64,000 nt of DNA from Podarcis liolepis (Eukaryota), in the NCBI GenBank assembly GCA_965112155.1, contig OZ218110.1; one strand, written 5' to 3'. Position numbers and translations under genes: made by a program. Under the pieces are notes generated by a model, which had not been told where the DNA came from, did not search any database, and saw nothing but the letters and a program-made list of their open reading frames with translations. The first letter of the stretch is position 1, and every line of letters starts with the position of its first letter. Shown here piece after piece: positions 3,136 through 36,950 of this stretch.

Positions 3136-4128
3136 TTAATCACAGCACTTTATGTGACACCATGAAACCATATTTCTGAATTTTATGACAGATTTAAACA
3201 GAGCTTCCTTCACCTCTCTGTTTCTCAAACTGTATATGAGGGGGTTCAACATGGGAGTCAAAATGGTGTAGAAGAAAGAGAAGATTTTATGAAGTTCCTT
3301 TAAGGTTTCTGTTTCAGGGACTACATAGACTAAGAATAATGAGCTATAGAAAAGTGTCACAACAATCAGATGGGAAGAGCAGGTGGCAAAGGCCTTCTGC
3401 TGAGCAGCTTTGGATTTAATTCGCAAGACGTTGAGAATAATGCGAACATAGGAAGCCAAAGTCAATAGAAAAGGGAAACCTATTGCCATATACCCGAGAA
3501 TAGAAGTTGCAAGTTTTACTAGGTGGGTATTGCTGCATGAGAGGTTTGCTATTGGATATACATCACAAAAGAAATCATCAATTTCATTGGGTCCACAGAA
3601 CGTTAGTTGTACTAAAAAAGAAGTTATGATAGTGTTGGTCACCAGGCCACACATCCAAGAAGTGAATGCTAATTGGAGGCAGAGTTTACCATTCATAATG
3701 GATGTGTAGTGCAGAGGTTTGCATATTGCCAAATACCTATCAAAAGACATCATTGCCAAAAGATAACATTCTGTGGCTAAACAGAAACCAAAGAAATAGA
3801 ATTGTGTGATGCACCCCTTAATGGATATGGACCTATCCCCAGTAATGAAACTAACCAGCATCCTGGGCAGGATGGTTGAAATGTAGCAAGTCTCCAACCC
3901 TGACAAGTTCATGAGGAAGAAGTACATGGGAGTATGAAGATGCTGGTCAACTGCAACCAGTAAAATAATTAGGAGGTTCCCAACAACAGACAAAGCATAG
4001 ATGGCAAAAAACAATACAAAGAGAAGTATTCTCAATCCGAGGAGATTGCCAAATCCCAGAAGGGTGAATGTTGCAGGGCTTGACAGATTTTTCTTCATTT
4101 CTGTTTGGTGGTAAATCTCAGCATCATT
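3136..4128 (-). CDS. Olfactory receptor OR1 (class II, OR11A-like), main coding exon; predicted CDS join(7386..7442,3136..4128), 349 aa
   Basis: OR motifs LHTPMYFFL, MSFDRYLAICKPLHY, KAFATCSSHL, PMLNPLIYSLRN. Acceptor gtatttcAG at 4129-4130. Internal ATG at 4098. Confidence 0.95.
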   Translation of the reverse strand, partial: NDAEIYHQTEMKKNLSSPATFTLLGFGNLLGLRILLFVLFFAIYALSVVGNLLIILLVAVDQHLHTPMYFFLMNLSGLETCYISTILPRMLVSFITGDRSISIKGCITQFYFFGFCLATECYLLAMMSFDRYLAICKPLHYTSIMNGKLCLQLAFTSWMCGLVTNTIITSFLVQLTFCGPNEIDDFFCDVYPIANLSCSNTHLVKLATSILGYMAIGFPFLLTLASYVRIILNVLRIKSKAAQQKAFATCSSHLIVVTLFYSSLFLVYVVPETETLKELHKIFSFFYTILTPMLNPLIYSLRNREVKEALFKSVIKFRNMVSWCHIKCCD

Positions 4129-7385: not shown

Positions 7386-7442
7386 CTCTAAAATTATAAT
7401 ACTTCCATGTGGAAAATCTGATGTATTCCATTCGGGCTCCAT
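7386..7442 (-). CDS. Upstream coding exon of OR1 (MEPEWNTSDFPHGSIIILE)
   Basis: 19 codons from ATG, then GAG|GTAAAT donor in phase 0. Homologous exons lie upstream of OR2, OR4 and OR5. Confidence 0.8.
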
Positions 7443-7721
7443 AAATAGGATGCAAGTTTCTCTTCCCTACCCCTGTTCTGTTCCAATCATGTCATTCTAA
7501 TGTTGGCTCTGGAATCTTCTTTCCAGTTAGTAGCTAACTGTTAGTATGCTCACTTATTTAAAGTACAAATGATCAAGTTGCCATGCTTTTATTCAGCAGC
7601 AAAATATCAGCAGGTAACCTTACTTGAACATGACTAAATGATCAAGGACATACTGTTTCTACAAGTTAATATTTCATTATGGCTAGGGAAAAGCGCTATA
7701 TCCCCTGAAAGCTATGTGCTC

Positions 7722-10031: not shown

Positions 10032-10988
10032 TCACAAAAAAATTCTGACAAATTTGAACAAAGCTTCCTTGACCTCTCTATTTCTCAAACTGTAAATGAG
10101 AGGATTTAACATGGGAGTAAAGATGGTGTAGAAGAAAGAGAAGATTTTATGTAATTCCTTTAATTTTTCTGTTTCTGGAACCACATAAACTAAGAATAAC
10201 GAAAGGAAGAAAAGTGTCACAACAATCAGATGGGAAGAGCAAGTGGCGAAGGCCTTCTGCTGGGCAGCTCTGGATTTAATTCGCAAGATGGTACAAATAA
10301 TGCAGACATAAGAAGCTAAAGTTAGGAGAAAAGGGGACCCTATTCCCATAAACCCCAAAATAAAAGTTGCAAGTTTTACTAGGCGGGTATTGCTGCATGA
10401 GAGGTTTGCTAATGGATAAACATCACAAAAGAAATCATCAATTTCATTGGGTCCACAGAAAGTTAGTTGACCCAAAAAAGAAGTTATGATAGTGTTGGTC
10501 ACCAGGCCACACATCCAAGAAGTGAATGCTAACTGGAGGCAGAGTCTACCACTCATTATAGTTGGGTAGTGCAGAGGTTTGCATATTGCCAAATACCTAT
10601 CATAAGACATCATTGCCAGAAGGTAACATTCTGTGCATGCCAAGAAACCAAAGAAATAGTATTGTGTGATGCAACCCTTAATAGATATGGACCTATCCCC
10701 AGTAAGGAAACTGACCAGCATCCTGGGCAGGATGGTTGAAATGTAGCAGGTCTCCAAGCCCGACAAGTTCACGAGGAAGAAATACATGGGCTTGTGAAGA
10801 TGCTGGTCAACTGCAACAAGTAAAACAATTAAGAGGTTCCCAACAAGCGATAAAGCATAGATGGCAAGGAACAAGGCAAAGAGGAGGATTCACAGATCAA
10901 AGTCATTGCCAAATCCCAGAAGGATGAATGTTGAAGGGATTGACAGATTTCCTCCCATTGCTTTTTGCTGTTGAATCTCAAATTCATT
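10032..10988 (-). pseudogene. Olfactory receptor OR2 with in-frame nonsense codon (R>stop)
   Basis: From ATG 10958: MGGNLSIPSTFILLGFGNDFDL*ILLFALFL. TGA at 10890-10892 where OR4/OR5 have CGA. The rest of the 7TM frame is intact. Confidence 0.9.
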
Positions 10989-12679: not shown

Positions 12680-12724
12680 CTCTGAAACTGTTATATTCCT
12701 AGGTGCGTTCCATTCAGTTTCCAT
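12680..12724 (-). CDS. Upstream coding exon of OR2 (METEWNAPRNITVSE)
   Basis: ATG...GAG|GTAAAT, 45 bp, a 12-nt in-frame deletion relative to paralogues. Confidence 0.75.
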
Positions 12725-13071
12725 ATGTAGGATGGAAGCTTCTCTTCTCTATCCCTGCTCTGGTCCAAACATTTCATTCCAGTGGTGACTCTGGTGTCTG
12801 GTGCTTCTTTTGTAGCAAAATATTACTGTACTCACTTATTTAATATACAAATGATCAAGTTGCCTTGCTGTTATTCAGCAGCAAAATATGAGAATGTAAA
12901 CTTATTTAACAGACTATTTCTACATATGAATATTAACTATGGTTAGGGGAAAAACTTAGCAGTTTGCCAGGGTTTGCCTTTCTATGTTTTGAATTCTAGG
13001 AGTTATAGTGAGCTATTACCATAGTCAGGCTTACATAACAGGACATCAATGACCCTGGAAACTACATGTTG

Positions 13072-16853: not shown

Positions 16854-17694
16854 CTACGTTACACATTCCAGAATGATACGTGAGCCGAAATAAAGCCATT
16901 CCCCAGAATCTTATTTCAGCATTCCTGATGGGGCATCCTCCAATGTACCAAAGGACAGGAGGCTAACTAGGGGAACTCAGGGGGAACGGGGAGTGCCCCC
17001 CACAGCATCTGCCACCAGACTCAACTGCCTCAAGATAGGATCCTCTGTATGTATTTCTTCCTTGAACTTTACATTGATATAATGGGTGAGAGAAAGCCGT
17101 GAAGGATTAGTAAAATAAATTAATTATTTAACTTGTCATGGCCTTTCCAGAAACATCCACAAAGGTAGTTCGAACCATGCATTTGAATTAACAGAACTTC
17201 ACATACAACTGGAAAGAAGAGAAATGGAGAGAAACCAAAATTGACCTATCCTAACACTGGTAAAAACAAACTATCATTTAGAAAAGCTCTTGAAATATGG
17301 TACCTCACCAACAAAAGAATAGCATCATATGGGATTAGCACTTGCCTTCAACCAATCTCTTTGATGCGCAGTGATATTCCCAGGATTCAAAACCTGTAGT
17401 AAAAAAGTTAAGGAAACGCAATAGGCTCCGAGCAAGCTGGAACAGCCACATTTGCACAGAACTGTTAGTGATAATGTTTATAACCCTAAATGGGTGTAGA
17501 TGCTTCTCTCTTAAAATAAGTGATCCTGGGGGACTTTGATGCGGATTGGCTATCGGGGGGGGGGGCATTTATCTTGCAACTGACTTCTAAACCCTATGGG
17601 GATTCTTGTATTAATTATTGCTCCATGGGATTGCTTTACTGTCTGGATGAAACATATGACTGGAATTTTGCAGCGTTCTGGTTTCAAGTTCAGT

Positions 17695-18040
17695 TGTGTG
17701 GGGCAGGAACGGAGGAAGGGGGTGTGGTGGGGATGGACTGCCCCGAGTGTCTTCGCTGAGGGGGGTGATATTTGGCGCGCCACCCACCCACGACTCCCAA
17801 GCTTACCCCGAGCAATCAGGGCAAGGGGGGGAGCTGCTGCCCCCAGGGGTGGCTTGCTCCGCCCCTGGCTACAGAATGTTCACGCCACTCCATGCACCCA
17901 AGTGGATATCCCGCACCTGGGAGGGCACCCTCCACACCTCATGCCCCTCAGGAGCGCACTCTGCCCCCCTCAGAAGCACACCCCACCCCCCTTGGGAGCA
18001 CGCCCATCCTGGGTAGCACAGCCATATGCTCTGCCACTGG
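17695..18040. mobile_element. GC-rich non-autonomous DNA transposon-like repeat
   Basis: Shares cccacgactcccaagcttaccccgagc with the 1215-1486 element; ends gctctgccactg. Confidence 0.4.
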
Positions 18041-18327
18041 TGTGGGGTGTATGTTTTAAAAACAAAATCATAACAAAATACCCGTTTTAAGACTTTTGAT
18101 TTATATACATAAATTGATTGCCTTTAGCTGCCCTCTAGTGTTCAAACTTCCTGCTTGACAGCAGCAGCTTCCTATAGCGTTCAGTTTATGCCCGGATTGA
18201 TTTTATAAACAATAATGGGAAAATAGCAGGCTTTTTGCTGTGATGTTTATTTTCAAAAGTATATTGGCAGTGCCACATTTATGATTTTGCAAAATGAGAA
18301 TCTGGGTTAAAATCATGCATTTCTCAT

Positions 18328-18366: not shown

Positions 18367-19960
18367 TAGTGATGGACAATGCCCCATGACTTGATTTGAA
18401 ATCAGCTCAGTATTTATTAACTTCGTCATAGTACTCTCAAGGCGATGAAAGCTCACCTAGGAATGCTCTGAGACAGTTTGGAATGTCATCACACATGCAC
18501 AGGGTATTATTATTTCCCCAGTTCTGCTCCAACAGTCTACCAATGACATTAGAGCAAGGCTTCCATTTGCTCTGGGAAAAGGTGAATAAACTGAGGCTCA
18601 GCCCAGAGAAGAGACAGATGGTGATTGGGGGGAACTACTCCGCAGGTGTGCCAACTTGAATAAAATATGGGAGCGGGATCCAGGTAAGCCCTGCCCCACA
18701 TGATTGATGACATGATGCAGCACACACACACTATTTGAGTGGCAATACCCATTTATTTGGGTGGCCTGGGCCCCTCAAATATTTTAGGGGAGGTGAAGGG
18801 ACCTCGGCACTTAGGAGCTGGTTCCTGTGCTACTCAGTGTGTACCCTTGATGAGATCACAATTCCTCTTTAAAAGGCAGAGGATTACACAACGATAGCTC
18901 TATCCTGGAGTAACTTTAATCAACGCTACTTCATCTGCTAGCTGTGTATACTGCTGGGGGAAAGGGAACTGATTATGACTACTCATACCCTGACAGCTTC
19001 TATACTACTGTCATTCATTAACTTGGTACCTTCCAGTTTAGATTAATTTAACATGCTTCATTTAGAAATGTCCTTAAAAGTTCACTTAATTCAGAATGCA
19101 GAGAATGCATTAGTCATGATTAGAATAGACCCATTCAGTAATGTTAAGAAATCCAGTCTTTTCTCATGCCTAATGCCTGTTAGAGTTTGCTCTCAATAAA
19201 GAAGTTTGGGCACAATCCTTAGTGTAAAGATTATAAGATCAGTAAATAAGTTCCGTTGATTCCAATGGGACTACTCTAAATATGGCAATGGATCCAGCTC
19301 TCAGGTATGATATCTTTTTCCACAAGGACATCATGATCCAACTTTATTTCTTTTATTTGTTTATTTTTACTCCTACACTTGAAAATTAAAGTCTCGGTGG
19401 GTATTCTTGTTCTTGGCTATTCTTGTTCATCCTGCTGAGACAGTGTGTGTGTGTATGTTAATATCAGTTTGGTGCCATTAATTAAATAGACATGGGTTTG
19501 GAAGAGGGAAGAGAATTCTCCTTGAGATGAGTGAGCATCTAACTTTACCTGTTTGAGAACTCCCCCCCCCCTTTGTCTGCAGTATTGACATCCCATTATG
19601 CGAGATAATAGTTTAACACCTAATGCTAATAGTTTAAGACACTTGGCTTAACTCCCAGAATAACAAATATAGGTAGCCAAACACAGGCAGAAACTGCTTA
19701 GTGATTTCTCCCAGTCACTGCAAACATCTAGTGACAGAAGCACTTGTATTTGATTATTTAACTGTGTCTAAATAAGTGTACCTACTGATATTTTGCTACT
19801 GAATGGAAGCCAGACTTCTTGAACATTTGCACTTTAATAAGTGCACGTTGATATTTTGTTAGTGGATGGGAGCAACATTGGAGCAAGACTCCATAGCATC
19901 TACCTGGAACAAAACTTGGGAGCACCATAAGGAATCAGAAGACAGTCGTGCATCCTAAGA

Positions 19961-20017
19961 ATGGAAACTGAGCTGAACACATCAGAGATTCCATCTAGAA
20001 ACACAATAATTTTGGAG
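19961..20017 (+). CDS. Upstream coding exon of OR4 (METELNTSEIPSRNTIILE)
   Basis: ATG 19961...TTG GAG|GTAAAT, 57 bp, phase 0. Confidence 0.85.
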
Positions 20018-20210
20018 GTAAATATAGTTTCTCATCCCCATGTGCTATCCTTGGAACAGGGTGTTTCTTTTTTATAGGCACCATATTTCTATCAGGTATG
20101 TACAGAAACCATTTCAAACTCATATGGCAACTCTTATCAATTTCATGGTGAACTGTGGAAGGTGGGTTGAGTAAGTCTGATCTGATTTCTGTTTAGATTC
20201 TTCCAAAATA

Positions 20211-20346
20211 GAGTGCTATTTTTTCTAGAAAAATAGGTGCCGGTACTCACCCTGAAATTGTTACTGTAAGTGTCACACTTTTTTATCAACAACAAAAAGA
20301 GGTGCCGGTACAGCATACCCTTGAGTGCCCCCTGAAAAAAGCACTG
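20211..20346. mobile_element. Short MITE
   Basis: Terminal inverted repeats agtgctatttttt/aaaaaagcact and an internal repeat aggtgccggtac. Confidence 0.5.
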
Positions 20347-21235
20347 GTTCAGATCAATTGCATTTACTTAATTTGCCTTCCTCTTTATAGGTCAGTCACA
20401 AGGTTTATTAGGAAAATATGCATACAATGTATGAAAAGCCATCTTTTACTGGACAGATCAATTTTAGACTCTTTAGACAACCGGGGATAGCATGTTGGAT
20501 TTCTCAATCCAATGCTAGGTACTCATAGTTTACATAATATTTCACGACATTTGAATATTTTGAATGTACTTCAGTTCTGGCTCAACTGAGTTTGTAGTTT
20601 TGACAGTTACGTTCTTCATCTTCATTTGGAATCTCTCAATCAATGAAGTTTCCAAGCTGCTGATTTTTACCCAGAATTCTGTTCACTTAATATAGGTAAT
20701 AAGGATCTGGAGTTACCTTGTTTGATTCAGTGAGACTGTTCTGGAAGAAAAATCAAAATCTATATGTAGTTTACTTCGGGATTGGAGAATGTTTCCTAAG
20801 CTAGTGTAATAAAAATATTGATAATTTGTACAACAATCAAGGTATTTGGTTCAGCTACTTTTCTCCTCCACCTAAAAATAGGGCTGATAAGAATTGAAGC
20901 CCCAAACCTCTGGTGGACATCACATTGTCTACGCCAGATTTTTGCTATGATGTCCTTTGGAACAGCCTCCCTTTACATGTGATCAGGTTCTTGGAGTGTT
21001 TAACCTATACCAGTGCCCTGGACTAGGGCTACAATTGTATGTCCTCTAACCCATATAGTTCCATTTTAGACTGCAGCTGTAGAAATCATATTAGGAGGAA
21101 TCACATTGAACACCAATAATAGAATCAGCACAGCACAAAAAGGGCATGTATGGAAATAGAGATGGGTGTCTTCAAACATCTGAATGGTTATATCACAGAA
21201 GTTAGTCCAGTATTCTGTACTGTTAGGGGTGTGGA

Positions 21236-21981
21236 ATTATATTATTATTATTATTATTAGACAACGTAATAATCATAAATGAATAAGAATAAAAATGTGC
21301 ACCCCACCACCAAGTCCATTCCATTGTAACTATCCAACCTCCCAAAAATTCAACACCTCTTGCAATGGCTTGACCCCTTTCCATTTTAACAGTACAAATT
21401 ATACAAACACCCTCCATATCTCCTTAAAATAATTTCTCCTGCATATTCCCCGTCTTACCTTAATGGCACATTCATCATTAATAGCTATACAGTGGTACCT
21501 CTGGTTACGTACTTAATTCATTCAGGAGGTCCATTCTTAACCTGAAATTGTTCTTAACCTGAAGCACTACTTTAGCTAATGGGTCCTCCTGCTGCAGCTG
21601 CGCCACCACCATGCGATTTCTGTTCTCATCCTGAAGCAAAGTTCTTAACCTGAAGCACTATTTCTAGGTTAGCGGAGTCTGTAACCTGAAGCGTATGTAA
21701 CCTGAAGTGTATGTAACCTGAGATACCACTGTATCCCACACCTCTTTATACCATTCTTCCATTTTATATTCAGTTTGCTCCTTCCTCTTTCTGGCTATAA
21801 TAATTCATGCAGCTGTCAATAAATATTTGAGCAAGTCCTTCATAGCCTGTGAACCTTACGCCCCATCGTAAATTGATAATAATGCTACCTCTGGACTTTT
21901 GGTCAGCTTTAACACAGTGATTTCTGTTATCTCCTTAAACACCCTTTGCAAAATAATAAATAAATCCATTATTCCATACTA
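21236..21981 (-). mobile_element. L1-like 3' fragment with (ATT)n tail, inserted in a CR1 remnant
   Basis: 14-bp TSD gttaggggtgtgga at 21222-21235 and 21982-21995; tail at the left end. Confidence 0.7.
21490..21731. mobile_element. Tc1/mariner (Tigger-like) MITE
   Basis: TIRs cagtggtacctc/gagataccactg flanked by TA. Same family as 57238-57479, in opposite orientation. Confidence 0.85.
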
Positions 21982-22384
21982 GTTAGGGGTGTGGACTTTA
22001 AGGTAACTCCCAACTCTACAGTTCTGAGATTCTCTGTTGTGTTATATTTCTTTATTGGGGAACATACAAAGCAATATCCCATTCATATAATATGTATGGA
22101 ATTCCCCAATCTTATTCTCAGGATTCCATTCCTGTCACTATTGGGAAGAGAAATGGCATGGGTTTCAAATACAAGATGCTGCAATCATGATTGGATTGGG
22201 GGAGGAAACATGAGAAAGGAGCAGGTAGGAAAACGTCCAGCAACCTTCTTTCCAGCTGCTTCTCTACCACAAATCTTCCCTTCCCAAAGCCATTGTGGAG
22301 GAGCAGATATCTCTTAAAATACAAATACAAATGTGACAACATTAGTTTGCTAATGTTTTTTTTTAAAAAAAAAATGTGTTTTAG

Positions 22385-23356
22385 AATGATGCTGACAGTC
22401 ATCACCAACAAACAGCAGTGGGAGGAAATCAATCAAGTCCTTCAGCATTCATCCTTCTGGGATTTGGCAACCTACTTGAACTGCGAATTCTCCTGTTCAT
22501 ATTGTTGCTTGCAATCTATGTTTTATCTCTAGTCATGAACTTCCTTGTTGTTTTTCTGGTTGTGGTTGACCAGCATCTTCAAACCCCCATGTATTTCTTC
22601 ATCATGAACCTGTCCTTCTTGGAGACTTGCTACATTTCCACCATCCTCCCCAGGATGCTGGTCAGTTTCCTTACTGGGGATAGGTCCATATCCATTACAG
22701 GATGTATCACACAATACTATCTCTTTGGTTTCTTGGCAGCCACAGAATGCTACCTTCTGGCCATGATGTCCTATGACCGGTATTTGTCAATATGCAAACC
22801 TCTGTGCTACATATCCATTATGAATGGTAGACTCTGCATCCGACTGGTGATCACTTCCTGGATGTGTGACCTGTTGACCAACACTATCATCACTTTGCTT
22901 ATGCTAAAGCTCACATTCTGTGGGCCCAATGAAATTGATCATTTCTTTTGTGATGTATATCCAGTGGCAAACCTCTCCTGTAACAATACTCAGCTCGTAA
23001 AACTTGCAACGTTTATTTTAGGAGTGATAGGAACAGGTCCCCCTTTCCTACTAACTTTGGCATCTTATGCCTTTATTATTTTCACTGTCTTACAAATTAA
23101 GTGTAAAGCTGCCCAGTGGAAGACCTTCACCACTTGCTCTTCTCATCTAATTGTGGTGACACTTTTCTATGGATCATTATTCCTTGTCTATATAATCCCT
23201 GAAACAGAAACACTGAAAAGACTACGCAAAACCCTTTCTCTGTTCTATACCATCCTGACTCCCTTGCTCAACCCCCTCATATACGGTTTGAGAAACAGAG
23301 AGATGAAAGAAGCTCTGCTTAAATCTGTCAGAAAATTCAGCAATAGAGTTTCATAG
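22385..23356 (+). CDS. Olfactory receptor OR4, main coding exon; predicted CDS join(19961..20017,22385..23356), 342 aa
   Basis: 7TM OR motifs. Codon 22418 is GTG, not ATG. Acceptor tgtgttttAG at 22383-22384. Confidence 0.9.
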   Translation, partial: NDADSHHQQTAVGGNQSSPSAFILLGFGNLLELRILLFILLLAIYVLSLVMNFLVVFLVVVDQHLQTPMYFFIMNLSFLETCYISTILPRMLVSFLTGDRSISITGCITQYYLFGFLAATECYLLAMMSYDRYLSICKPLCYISIMNGRLCIRLVITSWMCDLLTNTIITLLMLKLTFCGPNEIDHFFCDVYPVANLSCNNTQLVKLATFILGVIGTGPPFLLTLASYAFIIFTVLQIKCKAAQWKTFTTCSSHLIVVTLFYGSLFLVYIIPETETLKRLRKTLSLFYTILTPLLNPLIYGLRNREMKEALLKSVRKFSNRVS

Positions 23357-23844: not shown

Positions 23845-24664
23845 GGGGAGAGGATGCAAGTGGACAGCAGAAGTAGATTCTGGAAACTCTTATGCTGGAT
23901 CAGAGACGTATATTTCAAGGTTGGAAGGACAAACATCCACCATCTACTACACAGTGGTCTGAAGACCTCAGTGTCCCTCTTATGATTAAGCACAAAGCTC
24001 CTAATTGTCAGTCTTGTTTAGATACCTTTCTGGATACATGGGCTGTGTATGTTAATCTATATATATATTAGAATTGGTGTAATATGCTTATTGTCAATGT
24101 CAGGTGCTGCTATCTTTATATTTTCCTTCTAGTCATATTGTTATATTTGCAAATATATATATTTTTAAAGAAAACAAATCTGTTTTGTTATATCAAGACC
24201 AGGCTTTGGGAGAGTAACATGTAATCAGTAAAATTAATTTCCCCTGACATGACTGAACTTGTAACTTTCTGCATCTGAGAACATTTTTCCAGTTCATTTG
24301 GCTGGAGTATCGTTGATATCCTATAATGTGAGCCTTACCATGCTAATAGTTTAAGATGTTTGGCATAACTCCCAGAATTACTGATACATAGAGCCAAGCA
24401 TGGGGGGGGGGAATTGATCAGTGCCATCCCCCCAGTAACTGCAAGTATCCATCTACAGAAACATTTGTGCTTGATCATTTAAGCATATTTGAATAAGTAC
24501 ATCTGCTGATACTTTCCTAATAAATAGAAGCAAGACAAATGAGGAGCTTTTAGAAGAGCACACTGGGATTCTGCTATTCTAAGGAAGCATGACTCCACAA
24601 TATCCACCTGAAGCAAAGATTGTTAGGATAGAGAAGCAGCAAAACAGAGACTTGTCTTCTAGTG

Positions 24665-24721
24665 ATGGAACCTGAATCTAACACATCAGAAATTCCACCT
24701 AGAAATACAATCATTTTCGAG
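24665..24721 (+). CDS. Upstream coding exon of OR5 (MEPESNTSEIPPRNTIIFE)
   Basis: ATG 24665...TTC GAG|GTAAAT, 57 bp, phase 0. Confidence 0.85.
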
Positions 24722-27166: not shown

Positions 27167-28135
27167 GATGATGTTGAGATTCATCATCAAACAGAAATAA
27201 AGAAAAATATGTCAAGCCCTACAACATTCATCCTTCTGGGATTTGGTAATCTCCTTGACCTGCGAATCTTCCTCTTTGTATTGTTTTTTGCCATCTATGC
27301 TTTGTCGCTTGTTGCAAACCTCCTAATTGTTTTTCTGGTTGTGGTTGACCAGCATCTTCAAACCCCCATGTACTTCTTCATCATGAACCTGTCCTTCTTG
27401 GAGACTTGCTACATTTCCACCATCCTCCCCAGGATGCTGGTCAGTTTCCTTACTGGGGATAGGTCCATATCCATTATGGGATGCATCACACAATATTATT
27501 TCTTTGGTTTCTTGGCAGCTACGGAATGTTATCTTCTGGCCATGATGTCCTATGACCGGTATTTGGCAATATGCAAACCTCTGCACTACTCAACCATTAT
27601 GAATGGTAGACTCTGCTTCCAGTTAGCATTCACTTCTTGGATGAGTGGTCTGTTAACCAACACTATCATAACATCTCTCATGGTAGAGCTCACATTCTGT
27701 GGGCCCAATGAAATCGATGATTTCTTTTGTGATGTATATCCTGTGGCAAACCTTTCTTGTAGCAATACTCACATAGTAAGAACTGCAGTTTTTATACTAG
27801 GGCTGATGGTGACATTACCCCCCTTTCTACTAACTTTGGCCTCCTATAGCTGCATTATTTCCACTGTCTTGCAAATTAAATCCAAGGTAGCGCAGCAAAA
27901 GGCCTTCTCCACCTGCTCTTCTCATCTGATTGTTGTGTCACTTTTCTATGGGTCAATATTCCTTGTCTATATAGTCCCTGAAACAGAAACACTGAAGAGA
28001 CTACACAAAATGTTTTCTCTGTTCTACACCATCCTGACTCCCATGCTGAACCCCCTCATATACAGCTTGAGAAATAGGGAGGTGAAGGAAGCGCTGTGCA
28101 GATCTGTCAGAAAATTCAGCAGCAGAGTTTTGTAG
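27167..28135 (+). CDS. Olfactory receptor OR5, main coding exon; predicted CDS join(24665..24721,27167..28135), 341 aa
   Basis: All OR motifs present. Acceptor ttgtatttcAG at 27165-27166. The paralogous start position is ATA. Confidence 0.95.
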   Translation, partial: DDVEIHHQTEIKKNMSSPTTFILLGFGNLLDLRIFLFVLFFAIYALSLVANLLIVFLVVVDQHLQTPMYFFIMNLSFLETCYISTILPRMLVSFLTGDRSISIMGCITQYYFFGFLAATECYLLAMMSYDRYLAICKPLHYSTIMNGRLCFQLAFTSWMSGLLTNTIITSLMVELTFCGPNEIDDFFCDVYPVANLSCSNTHIVRTAVFILGLMVTLPPFLLTLASYSCIISTVLQIKSKVAQQKAFSTCSSHLIVVSLFYGSIFLVYIVPETETLKRLHKMFSLFYTILTPMLNPLIYSLRNREVKEALCRSVRKFSSRVL

Positions 28136-31100
28136 CTTCGCAATGTTGTGCTGGATCTGGTGAAGTATGCAGAAATGCACATAGATGAAGGGTTGAGAAA
28201 GGATTTGCCATTAATGGGATGTGAGGATCTCACATTTGCAAATACCTCAGTAAAGCAGTCTGAGCCAAATGTGCATATTGCAATTCAGTTCTCCAGCATA
28301 TTTTTTGACTTCTGAAGTTGTTGTGGCACACTTTTCAGCAGGTGGATCTGATCGGTATTTTCATGGATCTGTTAATCCATATTCACAATTATTATGGATA
28401 ATTGTAGTTGGTGAAGATATCAAATAAAGCATGATTTTTTAAATTGTAAAATGTGTATTTTCCATGGCTATTGAAAGAACAACAACAATTACTTGCATTT
28501 ACCTCCTGAATTGGCCTCCATTTCTATAATGCTAAAGGACAGAGGGTCTCTAGCTATTGTTGGCCAAAATGGTCTCAGATGGTAAGGGTTTTAGCCCAAC
28601 AATATCTAATGGGCCATTCATTCCCTACCACTGAACTAAACCAATATGAAAAATTTTAATGGAATTTCAAATGGCCATATTGCTGTGCCATTTCAATCTC
28701 TCGTTCAACTCTTATTCATCACCACTATGTGCTTATGTTCTGTGTCATCAAGATTTCAATCTTATGCCAATTTACTTCAGAATAATCTCCACTGAATTCA
28801 ATAGAAATTCCTTTTCTATACACATGCATAGGATTGTTCTGGAAGGATCCAATCCTGTGCACACTTCTCTGGAAGTAAGTCCTGTTAAAGTCATTGGGGA
28901 TTTTGATTATACATGTACAGGATTGCATGTTAGTTACATCAATATATTAATAATATTTTTAGTATATATATATTTTAAATTTATATCCTGCCTTTCCCCT
29001 GACAAAGACTCAAGGTGTCTTACAGATAAAATAATAACAGCTAAAAACATAGGGGAGGGAAAACAATATTTAAATAAAATAAAGTAATAAAATTAAAATT
29101 GTATCTGGCATGTCTGTGCTCATGTCTGTTCATGTGTGTGTATTTTAATCGACACATATTGGGACATTTCTATGGAAAGCCAGAGTAATGTTTGCTTTTT
29201 ACAAGAAGACAGAGAGATTTGACATGCCGAGTTTGATTTTGCAGGATGTCCTCCAACATTTCCTGAGTATTCTCAGGTAGAAGCAAGAAATTTCACATGG
29301 TTCAAGGACATCCACTATACAGTCTATACTGAACAGATGGGATTTAATCTGAAAGGGAGGATGAAAGCTGAATTGAAATTGGTGCTAGCCAAGTTACTTG
29401 ATTGTGTAGGTCTAGGTGGTCCTCCATCTGCACTTCACACCTTTCTCTGAAACTTGTCTCTTTGAAATATGTTGCCGTGTATTGAATGCTGCAACGGACA
29501 TAGTGATCTAATCCTTCTCACTTCTATTTAAGGCTGTTGCTTGTCCCAATTTATAGTCATCAGCACAGGAAATATTGCTGGGCTCCAGCTCACCTACAGA
29601 AAATTAACAGGTTTCCCAATTAATTAATTAATTAATTAAATTTGTATACCGCCCTATACCCATAGATCTCAGGACAGTTCACAATTTAACATTTCAACAA
29701 AAGTATGACTCTGAAAGGCAAAGATGGAATGTCTAATGAGTGCAAGCTTGTTTGTCCTCTAATTGCAGGCAACATGTGCTGCAGTTCTGGGGCAGTCTAC
29801 CCCCACACACCTCTGCTTCTTTTAGAACAATGTCAGGTTCCTGTCTTACCTAAACTATAAAGGGACCTCTTTGGAAGAAGGGGCTTGGGCCCCATGGAGA
29901 CCCTTGTTCCAGCTGAAGATCTAAAGGTGACCTGAAATACCCTTTCTAGGGCTCCCGCCAATAACTCCTCCTACCCTATACTGCTTTGATCTCCAGTTCT
30001 CTTTGTCAATTGGCCTCAGGAGCAAAGGGAGCAGCAGACCACATGGGAAGCCAAGTGTTTCAATAGAAGCCTCCATTTGCCTACCAAATGCTTCTATTGC
30101 TCATGATCTACTGGGGTGGGAGGGTCTATTCAGTGGCAGGAGGGAAATCGAGCTGCAAGCAATGACTCGGCTTCAAGAAATGAGAAAATAAAGGAGGAGC
30201 TGTCAGTGACTATACAACTCTCTCCATATCCTCTGGACCATTGTTAATGCCCACATTTCCATCTCTGCTCTGGAACTCACTGCCTTAGCTCCTGCCTCCA
30301 CACCTAGAGCTTGACACAGGAACTCAACTTTAAAATACTTGGAAGTGGGCTATGAAACTTCAAGAACCTCCAAGTCTTAGCTGAAATGGCACGAGCCTAG
30401 GATACCTCCTCTCATACCAACTTGTTCACTCCCTGGGTTCTTCTGGGTATCCACTTGTGCCACAAGGGTGGCTGAGGAATGGCTGGTTGAGATGTGAGAG
30501 AGGCCTTTCTCCATGATCATGCCAATCTCTACTTCAGGATGTTCAGTGCCTTCTACCCTCCATTCTTTTCCATGCCTAAGACTTTTATTACTGTTCCAGT
30601 TGGCATCTGCCATTTGACATTCCAAGTTGAGGATTTTTCTGTGGGCTGGATTTTGAAACTGGTTGGACACAGTGCTGTCTTTCTAGAAAAAGAGGTCCTG
30701 GCACTCACCATGGATACCTCCCTTGTTCTCTTACAGTGGCAATGGTGCCCACCTGAGAGGTGCCAAAAAGATTCCAGCTGAAAAAAGCTCTGTACCTGTT
30801 ACACCCGTCTCTGTTTTTCCAAATGTTTGCTTTTACAGTTGATTATTTAATTTTTGTTAGGTTTTTTTTCCTTCCTTAATGGAAGCTGGCTGCGCACGAT
30901 AAAGGCAGTGGTACGGAGGAATATTTTTTTAAATAAATAATACATCAATGACAATCCATCATTCTTTATTATGATGATCATAGTTCAGCCACTAAGTTAC
31001 AGTCAAACAAATACAGTTTGCAATTTGCAGTTAACAAGACAGTAGCAGTCTATTAGGAATTAATAGACAGAAGTTAGACTACATCCCACTTTTATTAACC

Positions 31101-31874: not shown

Positions 31875-33462
31875 TTCTTTTTTTTTTAATAATCTTTATT
31901 AAAATTTCAAAAAGTACAAAAAACAAAACAGAAAAACAAAAGAAAACACAAAAAACAACAAAAAAGGTTCCACCTTTTAAATCTCATTTTCAATAACTTC
32001 TTTTCATGACTTCCCCACGCCTCCCCTTCTTGTATTCCAGCTCCAATTGTTTGTTCAAACAAGTTTTTATCCTTAGTGTCTTAACCATAATTTGTTAATT
32101 TACTTAGCCATAATTTGTTAATATACTTCTTTATAATATGTTTAACCCTTAGTTCATTATTATGCTTGGTTCAGTTTATTCAGCAACTTTTAAAATATAT
32201 ACCTTAATCATATATAAAAGAAAAAAGAGATAAAGAAACAAGAGAAAAGATACCTTTCCTAAGGTTGTCCCTAGGTCCCATCCACGGGTTCCCCATTCTT
32301 ATAATAATAAACAACATAAAATTTTACACTGCAAAGTAAAAATCAGGCCCCCTTTGGACTTCTAAACCCCACCCTTCTCTCCCCAGTTTCAATCCCAAAC
32401 CAAAGTCCAGTTAGTCCATCTTTTTAGCCTGGTGACCTTACGTCCGAGGCTCTCAAATCTCTCTCAGTCACTTTCAGGCGGCTTCTTCGGAGGTCTCTTA
32501 TGCTTAACACCCAAACTCGAAGCGGTACCTTCTCAGTACTGACCATGTTTCTTCCAGCCAGGCCTACTTGTTTAAAGGTGGAACTCCAGCTCTGTTTCTT
32601 AAATCTATATGTCCCAAATAGTCCAGCTTTCACCTTGATCGAACTATAGTTCATCTTGGCAGGTCTCTGGCTCTCATTTGTCTTCTGTAACATTTCAGCC
32701 ACCCCTTCTTTCTGCTCCTCCTGTTCAGCAAGTGCCTTTTCCTCCTCTCCAATCTTTGATTTCTTTTCTTGTCCAGCTGCCTGTGTTTTGAACATCAAGT
32801 CCCTTTCCAACTCAGTAGGTATATTTTCTGTTGACTTCGATTTTGTAGGACTTGTAGACAAAACATGGCCTTGCTCGAACATCTCTCGCAGCTTTCCCAT
32901 AAGAAAGATAAGCTCTTGCAAGTCAGCTCGTATTTCCCGACCTAATTCCATTCTTGTAATGTCCAAGAATCCCCTCTAGAGGGATTCTGGTTACTTAGTA
33001 TTCCTTTCACTTCCGATCCAAAAGTCAAATTTATTTGTATCAATCTTTCTTTACTTTCAATATTTTGTAGCGATATAACCAGTTAAAATTTAGGCTTTCA
33101 GTTTTTCCCAACTTTGACAGCTAATTTGACAGCTGTCAAAAGTTTTCTGTAGATCCTCAGCAGGCTCTTTTCACGGTTTACTCCCGGGCTTGAGAAAAAT
33201 GGTACTTAATCCAAACAAATAAACTCTCGTCCTCCAGCACATTAACTTAGACTTTTAAATCCGTGGAATTTATATCTTTTATCCAATCACGAAAAGAAAA
33301 AACGACAGTTCTTCTCACAACCTTAGTTGGCAGATCCTTGCTTTAAACTGTTTACAATGGGGGGGAGACGGACTTCCTTTTTTTTTCCACCTCCCCCGCT
33401 CGTACCAAATTTACAAACGAATTATTTGTAATCCAATTTCCAAATTACTCACGGGTTGTTGT
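31875..33462 (-). mobile_element. Non-autonomous poly(A) retroelement, copy 1 (5'-truncated), with 175-aa ORF
   Basis: Poly(A) and AATAAA at the left end; colinear with 35742-38236. Confidence 0.75.
32424..32951 (-). CDS. Retroelement-encoded uncharacterised protein (175 aa)
   Basis: ATG 32951 MELGREIRADLQEL...RLKVTERDLRASDVRSPG; homologous to 36209-36820. Confidence 0.55.
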   Translation of the reverse strand: MELGREIRADLQELIFLMGKLREMFEQGHVLSTSPTKSKSTENIPTELERDLMFKTQAAGQEKKSKIGEEEKALAEQEEQKEGVAEMLQKTNESQRPAKMNYSSIKVKAGLFGTYRFKKQSWSSTFKQVGLAGRNMVSTEKVPLRVWVLSIRDLRRSRLKVTERDLRASDVRSPG

Positions 33463-36208: not shown

Positions 36209-36820
36209 TCAGCCTGGATCTATCACATCCGAGGCCTTTAAGTCTCTTAAGTCTCTTTCAGTCCCTTTCAGCCGGTTTTGTTGACTGTCCTTTATGTTGA
36301 ACATCCGATCTCGGAGCATCTTTGACCCAGTAGGGTCTGTATTTTTTCCAACCAGTCCTCCATATTCAAAGGAAGAGTCCAGATCCTGCTTCTTATTCTT
36401 TCCAAGTCCAAATATCCCAAATGTCCCAAACATTCCAATTTTCACCTTGGTCAAAATTGTAATCCATAGGTCTTCCGGACTCCCCATAGGGAAGAATCCC
36501 CAATCTTCATTCTTGATTTCAAACCAAATTTTCGACATCCGAACTTTACCTTCCTTGTATTCTGACCTTAGAGGCCTCTGGTTGTCCTTTTTCACTTGCA
36601 TCATTTCTGCTCCTCCTTCACATTCCTCCAAAACGGCACATATATCTTGCTTCCCAGCTGTAGATTCTTCTTGAGTCAAGTCCACCACTTCAGCAGAGTT
36701 GTTTATTTTAAAATTCAAAGTTGTCAGATTCGTAGCCATAACATGACTCTGCTCTTGCAGCATTCCCAGGAGTTCAAAGACCCTATCCAGCTCTGCTTGT
36801 AATTTTCCATCTGCAGCCAT
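36209..36820 (-). CDS. Retroelement-encoded uncharacterised protein (203 aa)
   Basis: ATG 36820 MAADGKLQAELDRVFELL...RLKGTERDLRDLKASDVIDPG; homologous to 32424-32951. Confidence 0.55.
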   Translation of the reverse strand: MAADGKLQAELDRVFELLGMLQEQSHVMATNLTTLNFKINNSAEVVDLTQEESTAGKQDICAVLEECEGGAEMMQVKKDNQRPLRSEYKEGKVRMSKIWFEIKNEDWGFFPMGSPEDLWITILTKVKIGMFGTFGIFGLGKNKKQDLDSSFEYGGLVGKNTDPTGSKMLRDRMFNIKDSQQNRLKGTERDLRDLKASDVIDPG

Positions 36821-36950
36821 TGTAATGTCCCAAATCCCCTCTAGAGGGATTTTGGTTACTAAGTGTTCTTTTTCCAACAATCAGGTTATTTTGTTAAAAT
36901 AAAAAAATTCCTTCCAGTAGCACCTTAAAGACCAGCTAAGTTAGTTATTG

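Follow-up and report, generated by a model that had tools for sequence, protein, structure and literature searches.

OR1, OR2, OR4 and OR5, four olfactory receptor (OR) genes found in a 64,000-nt stretch of Podarcis liolepis DNA (assembly GCA_965112155.1, contig OZ218110.1; here termed the window), appear to have their coding sequence (CDS) divided over two exons. A small upstream exon of 15–19 codons starts with an ATG and ends at a splice donor. The sequence evidence puts the probability that this is a genuine coding exon 1, and that this clade has a two-exon CDS, at roughly 80%. Class II OR genes form a tandem cluster in the window, with 10 OR bodies among the 12 open reading frames (ORFs) of at least 200 aa, and the best protein matches are with Podarcis muralis (98%) and other lacertids. 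The four genes form one subfamily of neighbouring paralogues inside the window. A split-CDS OR subfamily had been proposed here in a preliminary description of the window, and the proposal is supported by start losses that are shared, by a TAG codon at the OR4 acceptor, by a conserved upstream island of coding type, and by the presence of the exon-1 peptide across Squamata.

Exon structure and loss of the main-exon start

The OR4 mini-exon (positions 19961–20017, plus strand) consists of 19 codons from ATG to GAG, METELNTSEIPSRNTIILE, with an NTS sequon at residues 6–8, and is followed by GTAAAT. The same donor follows the mini-exons of OR1 (7386–7442, minus strand; 19 codons, MEPEWNTSDFPHGSIIILE), OR5 (24665–24721, plus strand; 19 codons, MEPESNTSEIPPRNTIIFE) and OR2 (12680–12724, minus strand; METEWNAPRNITVSE), the last having 15 codons, a 12-nt in-frame deletion and NIT as its sequon. 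All four show one N-x-S/T sequon each. The mini-ORFs listed in the preliminary description are exact in coordinates and sequence, every one ending GAG/GTAAAT (the slash marks the exon end), and this donor agrees with MAG/GTRAGT at 7/9 positions. The OR2 mini-exon, with its deletion, is the most altered of the four.

The 9-mer GAGGTAAAT by itself is present no more often than expected by chance, its counts matching those of shuffles (19 vs 19.5, one mismatch allowed). There are five exact copies in the window, of which the fifth, at 28497 (minus strand), is preceded by ATGGAG and is not homologous to the others. The segment at 28480–28522 (minus strand), ATGGAGGCCAATTCAGGAG/GTAAAT, was considered as a further mini-exon and rejected; it is out of phase, displays no homology to the four copies, has no downstream exon, and was taken as chance. 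Judged from the sequence, what counts as signal is that the four copies are homologous and keep their frame, not the donor 9-mer alone.

The main exons begin at 4128 (OR1, minus strand), 10988 (OR2, minus strand), 22385 (OR4, plus strand) and 27167 (OR5, plus strand), each after a cag or tag acceptor, and the intron lengths are 3257, 1691, 2367 and 2445 nt, respectively. OR1 exon 2 (3136–4128) opens with the linker NDAEIYHQTE, OR5 exon 2 (27167–28135) with the linker DDVEIHHQTE, and OR4 exon 2 (22385–23356, stop codon 23354–23356) with the 11-codon linker NDADSHHQQTA, followed by the seven-transmembrane (7TM) body; OR2 exon 2 covers 10032–10988. In all four main exons an AG acceptor is followed by 10–11 stop-free phase-0 codons, as had been claimed, and the length differences are in multiples of three, likewise as claimed, the mini-exons differing by 12 nt and the linkers by 3 nt. 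The GT donor, AG acceptor and phase 0 found in all four genes fit the split-OR criterion of Barnes et al. (2020). The conserved initiation Met and conserved junction that also belong to this criterion are found in the four window paralogues and in the orthologue and clade models, which are predicted proteins. The joined exon 1 and exon 2 protein was taken from the database protein P0001. P0001 is P. muralis XP_028558736.1, identical with UniProt A0A670JIE3; it has 342 aa, begins METELNTSEIPSRNTIILE/NDADSHHQQTAVGGNQSS, and equals the spliced OR4 model. Its residues 1–19 are the OR4 mini-exon peptide with no differences, and OR4 exon 2 shows 98% identity to it.

Upstream of the acceptor the paralogues display gctcactaac (or ctcagtaat, ctcactataac, tgctaat), a pyrimidine-rich tract, and ttcag or tttag. 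These conserved letters can be taken for a branch point followed by its tract and a 3′ splice site. In OR1, OR2 and OR5 the approximately 16 codons that precede the acceptor are open and appear conserved, which the putative splice signals would explain without a coding role. The OR4 intron (20018–22384, plus strand) has the donor GTAAAT, a branch-point-like tgctaat, a T/A-rich tract and the acceptor ttttag.

Of importance, two of the four genes have lost the start codon of the main exon. OR4 reads ...QQTAVGGNQSS, with GTG at the position of the ancestral ATG, and its first Met lies inside the first transmembrane segment (TM1). Directly before exon 2 there is an in-frame TAG (22382–22384), which is the acceptor's own, and therefore read-through of the intron cannot give OR4 a start. 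In OR5 the old start position is ATA and the sole earlier Met sits within the NMS sequon. The internal ATG is kept in OR1, where it begins MKKNLSS..., and in OR2. The OR4 orthologues of P. muralis, Lacerta agilis and Zootoca vivipara all have AVGGNQSS, and the OR5 orthologues all have EIKKNMSS. In these three species the start-less ORFs are otherwise intact (336–369 aa), and since they stay open in three genera, it is unlikely that OR4 and OR5 simply died on loss of the ATG. Members in Rhineura, Tiliqua and snakes have the mini-exon, and the internal ATG is likewise absent.

A sister paralogue outside the window (P0008 in Podarcis raffonei, P0126 in Zootoca) also has no main-exon ATG (..TALGGNQSS). 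It is modelled with another first exon of 21 residues, MTIAPM(S/T)CLTASQWLTAGESW, which is conserved between the two genera; models of this gene from P. muralis and L. agilis start elsewhere. A tblastn search of the window with this alternative first exon, MTIAPMSCLTASQWLTAGESW, gave noise only and no counterpart.

Constraint and distribution in squamates

When the upstream regions of OR1 and of OR4 and OR5 were compared by blastn, only two islands were alignable. One of these, 86–91 nt in length, consists of the mini-exon, about 22 nt of leader and the donor; past the donor the intron is no longer alignable between distant paralogues. In the mini-exon of the paralogues the proportion of nonsynonymous differences (pN) is 0.11–0.25 and that of synonymous differences (pS) 0.42–0.69, giving a ratio (dN/dS) of 0.14–0.45, with 0.19–0.27 in the main exon. 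Between the three intact genes the mini-exon varies at 5, 4 and 10 of 19 sites for codon positions 1, 2 and 3, respectively (one-sided Fisher p = 0.03). DNA runs of the same species (X5) and of a relative (X7) were also used. X7 differs from the OR4 mini-exon at one position, 19969 T>C, a synonymous change of ACT to ACC.

The other island, of about 110 bp, is situated 120–220 bp before the mini-ORF ATG. It was found by blastn among paralogues and in the alignment, at 7551–7660 (OR1, minus strand), 12813–12908 (OR2, minus strand), 19736–19843 (OR4, plus strand) and 24457–24538 (OR5, plus strand). It contains ..CTGATATTTTGCTGCTGAATAA..TTGATCATTTG..TTTAAATAAG.., where TTTAAATAAG is TATA-like, and may represent an OR promoter. 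No clear O/E site (TCCCNNGGGA) was seen in the island by eye, no motif scan having been run.

The peptide MExExNTSEIP..E/N recurs in RefSeq models from lacertids, an amphisbaenian, a skink, snakes and geckos. The amphisbaenian Rhineura has MGPELNTSEVPPANIIILE/N.. and MEPERNTSEFPARNITILE/D.. (XP_061446079.1, XP_061445190.1). The skink is Tiliqua; the snakes comprise five genera (Thamnophis, Erythrolamprus, Crotalus, Notechis, Liasis) and the geckos four (Euleptes, Paroedura, Eublepharis, Heteronotia). Identity to OR4 across the models is 41–100% in the mini-exon, 29–91% in the linker and 64–95% in the receptor body, and the aligned clade members keep M1, E4 and the ...E/N junction. Among the lacertids, the L. 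agilis model (XP_033024649.1) shares 18/19 mini-exon residues with OR4, the Z. vivipara model (XP_034991441.1) has the same peptide minus four residues by an in-frame deletion, and the OR5 mini-exon peptide also opens the P. raffonei and Zootoca orthologue models. A word-based protein search with residues 1–40 of P0001 gave P0001 alone, the method being too insensitive with so short and variable a query to bear on distribution.

A tree was made from the receptor body alone by a quick IQ-TREE search. All mini-exon models fall in one squamate-only clade of 76 sampled rows (SH-like approximate likelihood ratio test, SH-aLRT, 99), and the turtle ORs and the other ORs of the window fall outside it. 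A sister clade includes P0104 and P0105, two models whose shorter exon resembles the mini-exon. Within the squamate-only clade, models that have the mini-exon are interleaved with models that lack it. The OR1 body, over the region used for the tree, is identical to P0029, a 312-aa single-exon model of this genome. The OR1 DNA carries the mini-exon and P0029 does not; thus absence from a model is not absence from a gene. Since the exon is present in Gekkota as well as in other squamates, its origin would date back at least to the ancestor that all living squamates share. That node is roughly 200 million years old.

The models of the clade are of five types. In one, the mini-exon is joined to the canonical acceptor; in another, to an acceptor 23 codons upstream (P. 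raffonei). A third type (P. muralis.1, L. agilis) begins at an ATG within the intron and reads through, a fourth has an extra in-frame upstream ATG (Zootoca), and a fifth uses the internal ATG only, e.g. the OR1 orthologues including P0029. The exon had been described as hidden. This does not hold for OR4, whose model is already in RefSeq and UniProt for P. muralis and in RefSeq for L. agilis; the mini-exon is not hidden from NCBI or Ensembl where a gene has no other start. It does hold for the OR1 orthologues, annotated from the internal ATG.

Transcript-side observations and rival explanations

Several points count against exon 1 being coding in this clade. The runs on record include no RNA run that contains the stretch. 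Run X1, which is RNA by guess only, gave a 222-nt contig of which 162 nt match positions 22383–22544 with two mismatches. The match stops 2 bases before OR4 exon 2, as would that of a spliced cDNA (exon 1 ends ..GGAG and the intron ..TTAG), but its remaining 60 nt did not map to the mini-exon, where X1 depth is 0. The contig may mean that the acceptor is joined to a different partner, or it may have no significance. The putative RNA runs otherwise gave mostly repeat-derived contigs. Upstream ATGs and short upstream ORFs (uORFs) are found within 130 nt of all four mini-ORF ATGs, and no ‘first AUG’ argument can be made for initiation at the mini-ORF. The linker displays a dN/dS near 1 and is nearly neutral, yet stays open. 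The evidence across species consists of predicted proteins, not genomic DNA, and the RefSeq models of the OR5, OR2 and OR1 orthologues are mutually inconsistent in their use of an alternative acceptor, an intronic ATG or the internal ATG. The sequon that had been claimed for every mini-exon is found in all four window copies but is missing in some gecko models (P0057, P0054), so that glycosylation at this first sequon would not be the whole story.

The uORF of the putative OR4 leader is at 19866–19958 (plus strand). It has 30 codons, MGATLEQDSIASTWNKTWEHHKESEDSRAS, and its TAA stop lies 2 nt before the mini-ORF ATG. The 19866 ATG is within an 11-nt insertion specific to OR4 relative to the paralogues. 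In the Zootoca RefSeq models P0123 and P0010 a homologous uORF is fused in frame to the mini-exon via a one-base length difference.

The upstream exon could also be a non-coding 5′ untranslated region (UTR) in which the ORF is an in-frame accident spread by tandem duplication. Translation would then start from the main-exon ATG and the members without this ATG would make no receptor. OR1 and OR2 do keep an internal ATG, the 312-aa OR1 orthologue models, including P0029, begin there, and given the upstream ATGs in the leader the first AUG may not be that of the mini-ORF. However, this reading is quite unlikely. The peptide can still be made out in geckos and snakes alike, with M1, E4 and ...E/N kept, and the substitution pattern is coding-like. 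The mini-exon is alignable between distant paralogues and the flanking intron is not, and the OR4 and OR5 lineages, which lack the internal ATG, are still intact in three genera. It is very unlikely, for its part, that OR4 and OR5 are start-loss pseudogenes rescued by gene predictors with a fortuitous upstream ORF. Their ORFs are complete except for the start, with all OR motifs and Pfam 7tm_4 scores of 136–151 bits, the paralogue dN/dS is 0.19–0.27, start-less intact genes persist in Podarcis, Lacerta and Zootoca, and the members in Rhineura, Tiliqua and snakes that have no internal ATG carry the mini-exon. In favour of the pseudogene reading are the lack of a canonical start in both genes, the stop codon that breaks the neighbouring OR2, and a P0001 cluster with no member from this genome's own annotation.

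A different N-terminus would result from an unspliced or intron-started transcript with an in-frame intronic ATG near the acceptor, or from joining of the mini-exon to another acceptor. For OR4, the TAG directly preceding exon 2 speaks against this. In OR1, OR2 and OR5 approximately 16–20 pre-acceptor codons are open and include an ATG (MRWISKLSNVFKIVFQ..., MVKQEEMVSKLTITCQIVFQ...), but by chance a run of 16 open codons would occur in about half of cases, and the conserved letters (ctcactaac, pyrimidine tract, cag) read as splice signals. Intronic ATGs are used in the RefSeq models P0133, P0131 and P0134; their positions differ, however, and are unstable even between Podarcis versions or species (M vs G in ...GVSKLT...). 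The P. raffonei models P0002 and P0132 use another acceptor and gain 23 residues, but these extra residues are not conserved in OR5 of the window. Another upstream partner could be represented by the 60 unplaced nt of the X1 contig. Taken together, another N-terminus appears quite unlikely, and the two-exon CDS with a coding exon 1 is the preferred reading.

Receptor bodies, neighbouring features and known systems

The exon-2 translations score 135.8 (OR4), 150.8 (OR5) and 155.5 (OR1) bits with Pfam 7tm_4 (PF13853), where the gathering cut-off is 27. OR signatures can be read in the translations: F-I-L-L-G-F before TM1, PMYFF in TM2, MSYDRY at the end of TM3, KAFSTCSSH at intracellular loop 3 and TM6, NPLIYSLRN in TM7, and an N-terminal N-x-S/T. 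Their positions are invariant columns in both protein alignments. OR2 has an in-frame TGA at 10890–10892 in TM1 (GNDFDL-stop-ILLF). At the position of this stop the P. muralis and P. raffonei orthologues P0032 and P0136, both intact, have R (GNDFELRILLF). By its sequence OR2 is a pseudogene or a null allele in this genome. It seems likely that the stop came from a CGA>TGA change and that it represents a species-specific pseudogene or a segregating null allele.

Three ORFs between the OR genes do not encode ORs (164–223 aa). The ORF at 17596–18090 (plus strand) is G+C-rich and rich in Pro, Gly and Arg. Those at 32424–32966 and 36209–36880 (both minus strand) have C-termini that are alike (..RLKxTERDLRxxxASDVxxPG). 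The OR4 intron contains two stretches, approximately 20163–20404 and 21252–21977, with a summed contig depth of 10^4–10^6 in DNA runs of two species vs about 33 in the flanks; this read depth points to very high-copy repeats. The segment at 22350–22375, a T9/A10 run, connects to position 21487 in some contigs, like a repeat tail. A tRNA scan of the OR4 intron repeat found no tRNA-like part.

From the observed anatomy, frame, conservation and clade distribution, a course of splicing and translation can be proposed for the two-exon genes. Exon 1 would provide a short leader, the initiation ATG and 15–19 codons ending GAG/GTAAAT. The intron of 1.7–3.3 kb would be excised by way of the branch-point-like CTAAC or CTAAT, the pyrimidine tract and YAG, and exon 2 would continue in phase 0 with 10–11 codons that were formerly 5′ UTR, followed by the normal receptor. 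The product would be a 7TM receptor with an extracellular N-terminal tail approximately 30 residues longer than usual. With the upstream ATG in use the old start would become dispensable and could decay in some lineages, as to GTG in OR4 and ATA in OR5.

The tail, i.e. mini-exon plus linker, has 25–30 residues in the four genes, with 5–8 Asp/Glu and 0–2 Lys/Arg. Besides the usual sequon directly ahead of TM1, the tail brings one of its own. A signal peptide was considered for the tail and is ruled out by composition (5–8 acidic and 0–2 basic residues, no hydrophobic core). AlphaFold2, run with a 63-sequence alignment, gives a predicted local distance difference test (pLDDT) score below 50 for residues 1–47 and a normal 7TM body (mean pLDDT 70; predicted template modelling score, pTM, 0.66). 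By this model the tail is most likely flexible and extracellular, with no predicted fixed fold.

A broader proposal is put forward tentatively, and is held to be rather doubtful. The whole squamate OR clade, with several paralogues per genome, may have an obligatory two-exon CDS, and its conserved, acidic, glycosylated tail may be a natural counterpart of the Rho-tag, promoting folding, export from the endoplasmic reticulum (ER) or surface delivery, or else gating ligand access. The Rho-tag itself carries N-glycosylation sites. By analogy with this tag the natural tail could aid folding, ER export or surface delivery through its extra glycan, with ER export and surface delivery as the favoured guess. 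The Rho-tag (the first 20 residues of bovine rhodopsin) and the Lucy tag are N-terminal additions, of about 20 residues, that help recombinant ORs reach the plasma membrane (PMC6706138). The Rho-tag is similar to the squamate tail in being an extracellular N-terminal addition of like length, and the analogy is functional only. The Lucy tag, in contrast, is a cleavable hydrophobic signal peptide, whereas the squamate tail is acidic and not hydrophobic. Being a natural N-terminal extension, the tail lends itself to work on OR trafficking, which has long stood in the way of de-orphaning ORs in practice.

A survey of vertebrate ORs mines these genes by a single-exon procedure, merely citing the split-OR paper and a cichlid study, and the counts of intact and pseudogene ORs in reptiles rest on such mining (PMC10869828). 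An OR4-like gene, which has no ATG ahead of TM1, would presumably count there as truncated or dead, and the tail of genes such as OR1 would be shortened by 29 residues. If the clade is indeed one of obligatory two-exon genes, single-exon surveys of squamates would systematically truncate its members or miscall them as pseudogenes. In the literature that could be searched for coding introns in squamate or reptile ORs, no account of this clade turned up. Its existing models are automatic predictions for which no published description was found, and the shared architecture has not been recognised as such in them. The split-OR kind is already known (Barnes et al., 2020; PMC7055050), as is the exact OR4 model in RefSeq and UniProt. 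What is new is the recognition of a single architecture that is ancient, has multiple members across the squamates and includes a long conserved tail, and the finding that its annotations are inconsistent. With one shared architecture recognised, curators could harmonise the contradictory RefSeq models.

In mammals, 13 human and 41 mouse ORs have a CDS over two exons (Barnes et al., 2020, BMC Genomics 21:196, PMC7055050). As in the squamate genes, the initiation ATG is in the upstream exon and the intron is in the extracellular N-terminal region. Introns are kilobases long in both, with means of 3.4–3.8 kb in the mammalian genes (PMC7055050) and 1.7–3.3 kb in the four window genes. Some mammalian split ORs were also once called pseudogenes for want of a start, and some retain a single-exon alternative start (PMC7055050). 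However, the mouse genes represent 23 independent small events, in clusters of 2–4 genes, and the human genes are each independent (PMC7055050), whereas in squamates one clade of geckos, skinks, lacertids, amphisbaenians and snakes has the same exon. The mammalian exons mostly add 1–13 residues to give an ORF of 305–327 aa (PMC7055050); the predicted squamate product is about 30 residues longer, at 336–345 aa, and has an extra sequon. The mammalian split ORs are supported by RNA (PMC7055050), and the squamate clade is known here from sequence and predicted models.

The closest geometry is that of mouse Olfr718-ps1, which has 344 aa and an intron after residue 16 (PMC7055050, Supplementary File 3). 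It resembles the squamate genes in the 16–19 or so residues of exon 1 and in the long ORF of 342–344 aa. Olfr718-ps1 is expressed abundantly and singly in a mature olfactory neuron (PMC7055050), and therefore a receptor of this kind can be functional. The likeness is one of geometry. Olfr718-ps1 is restricted to rodents; the squamate clade goes much further back in time and has several paralogues in each genome. Among split ORs, which were first curated in mouse and human, the squamate clade would to date be the example of greatest age and size.

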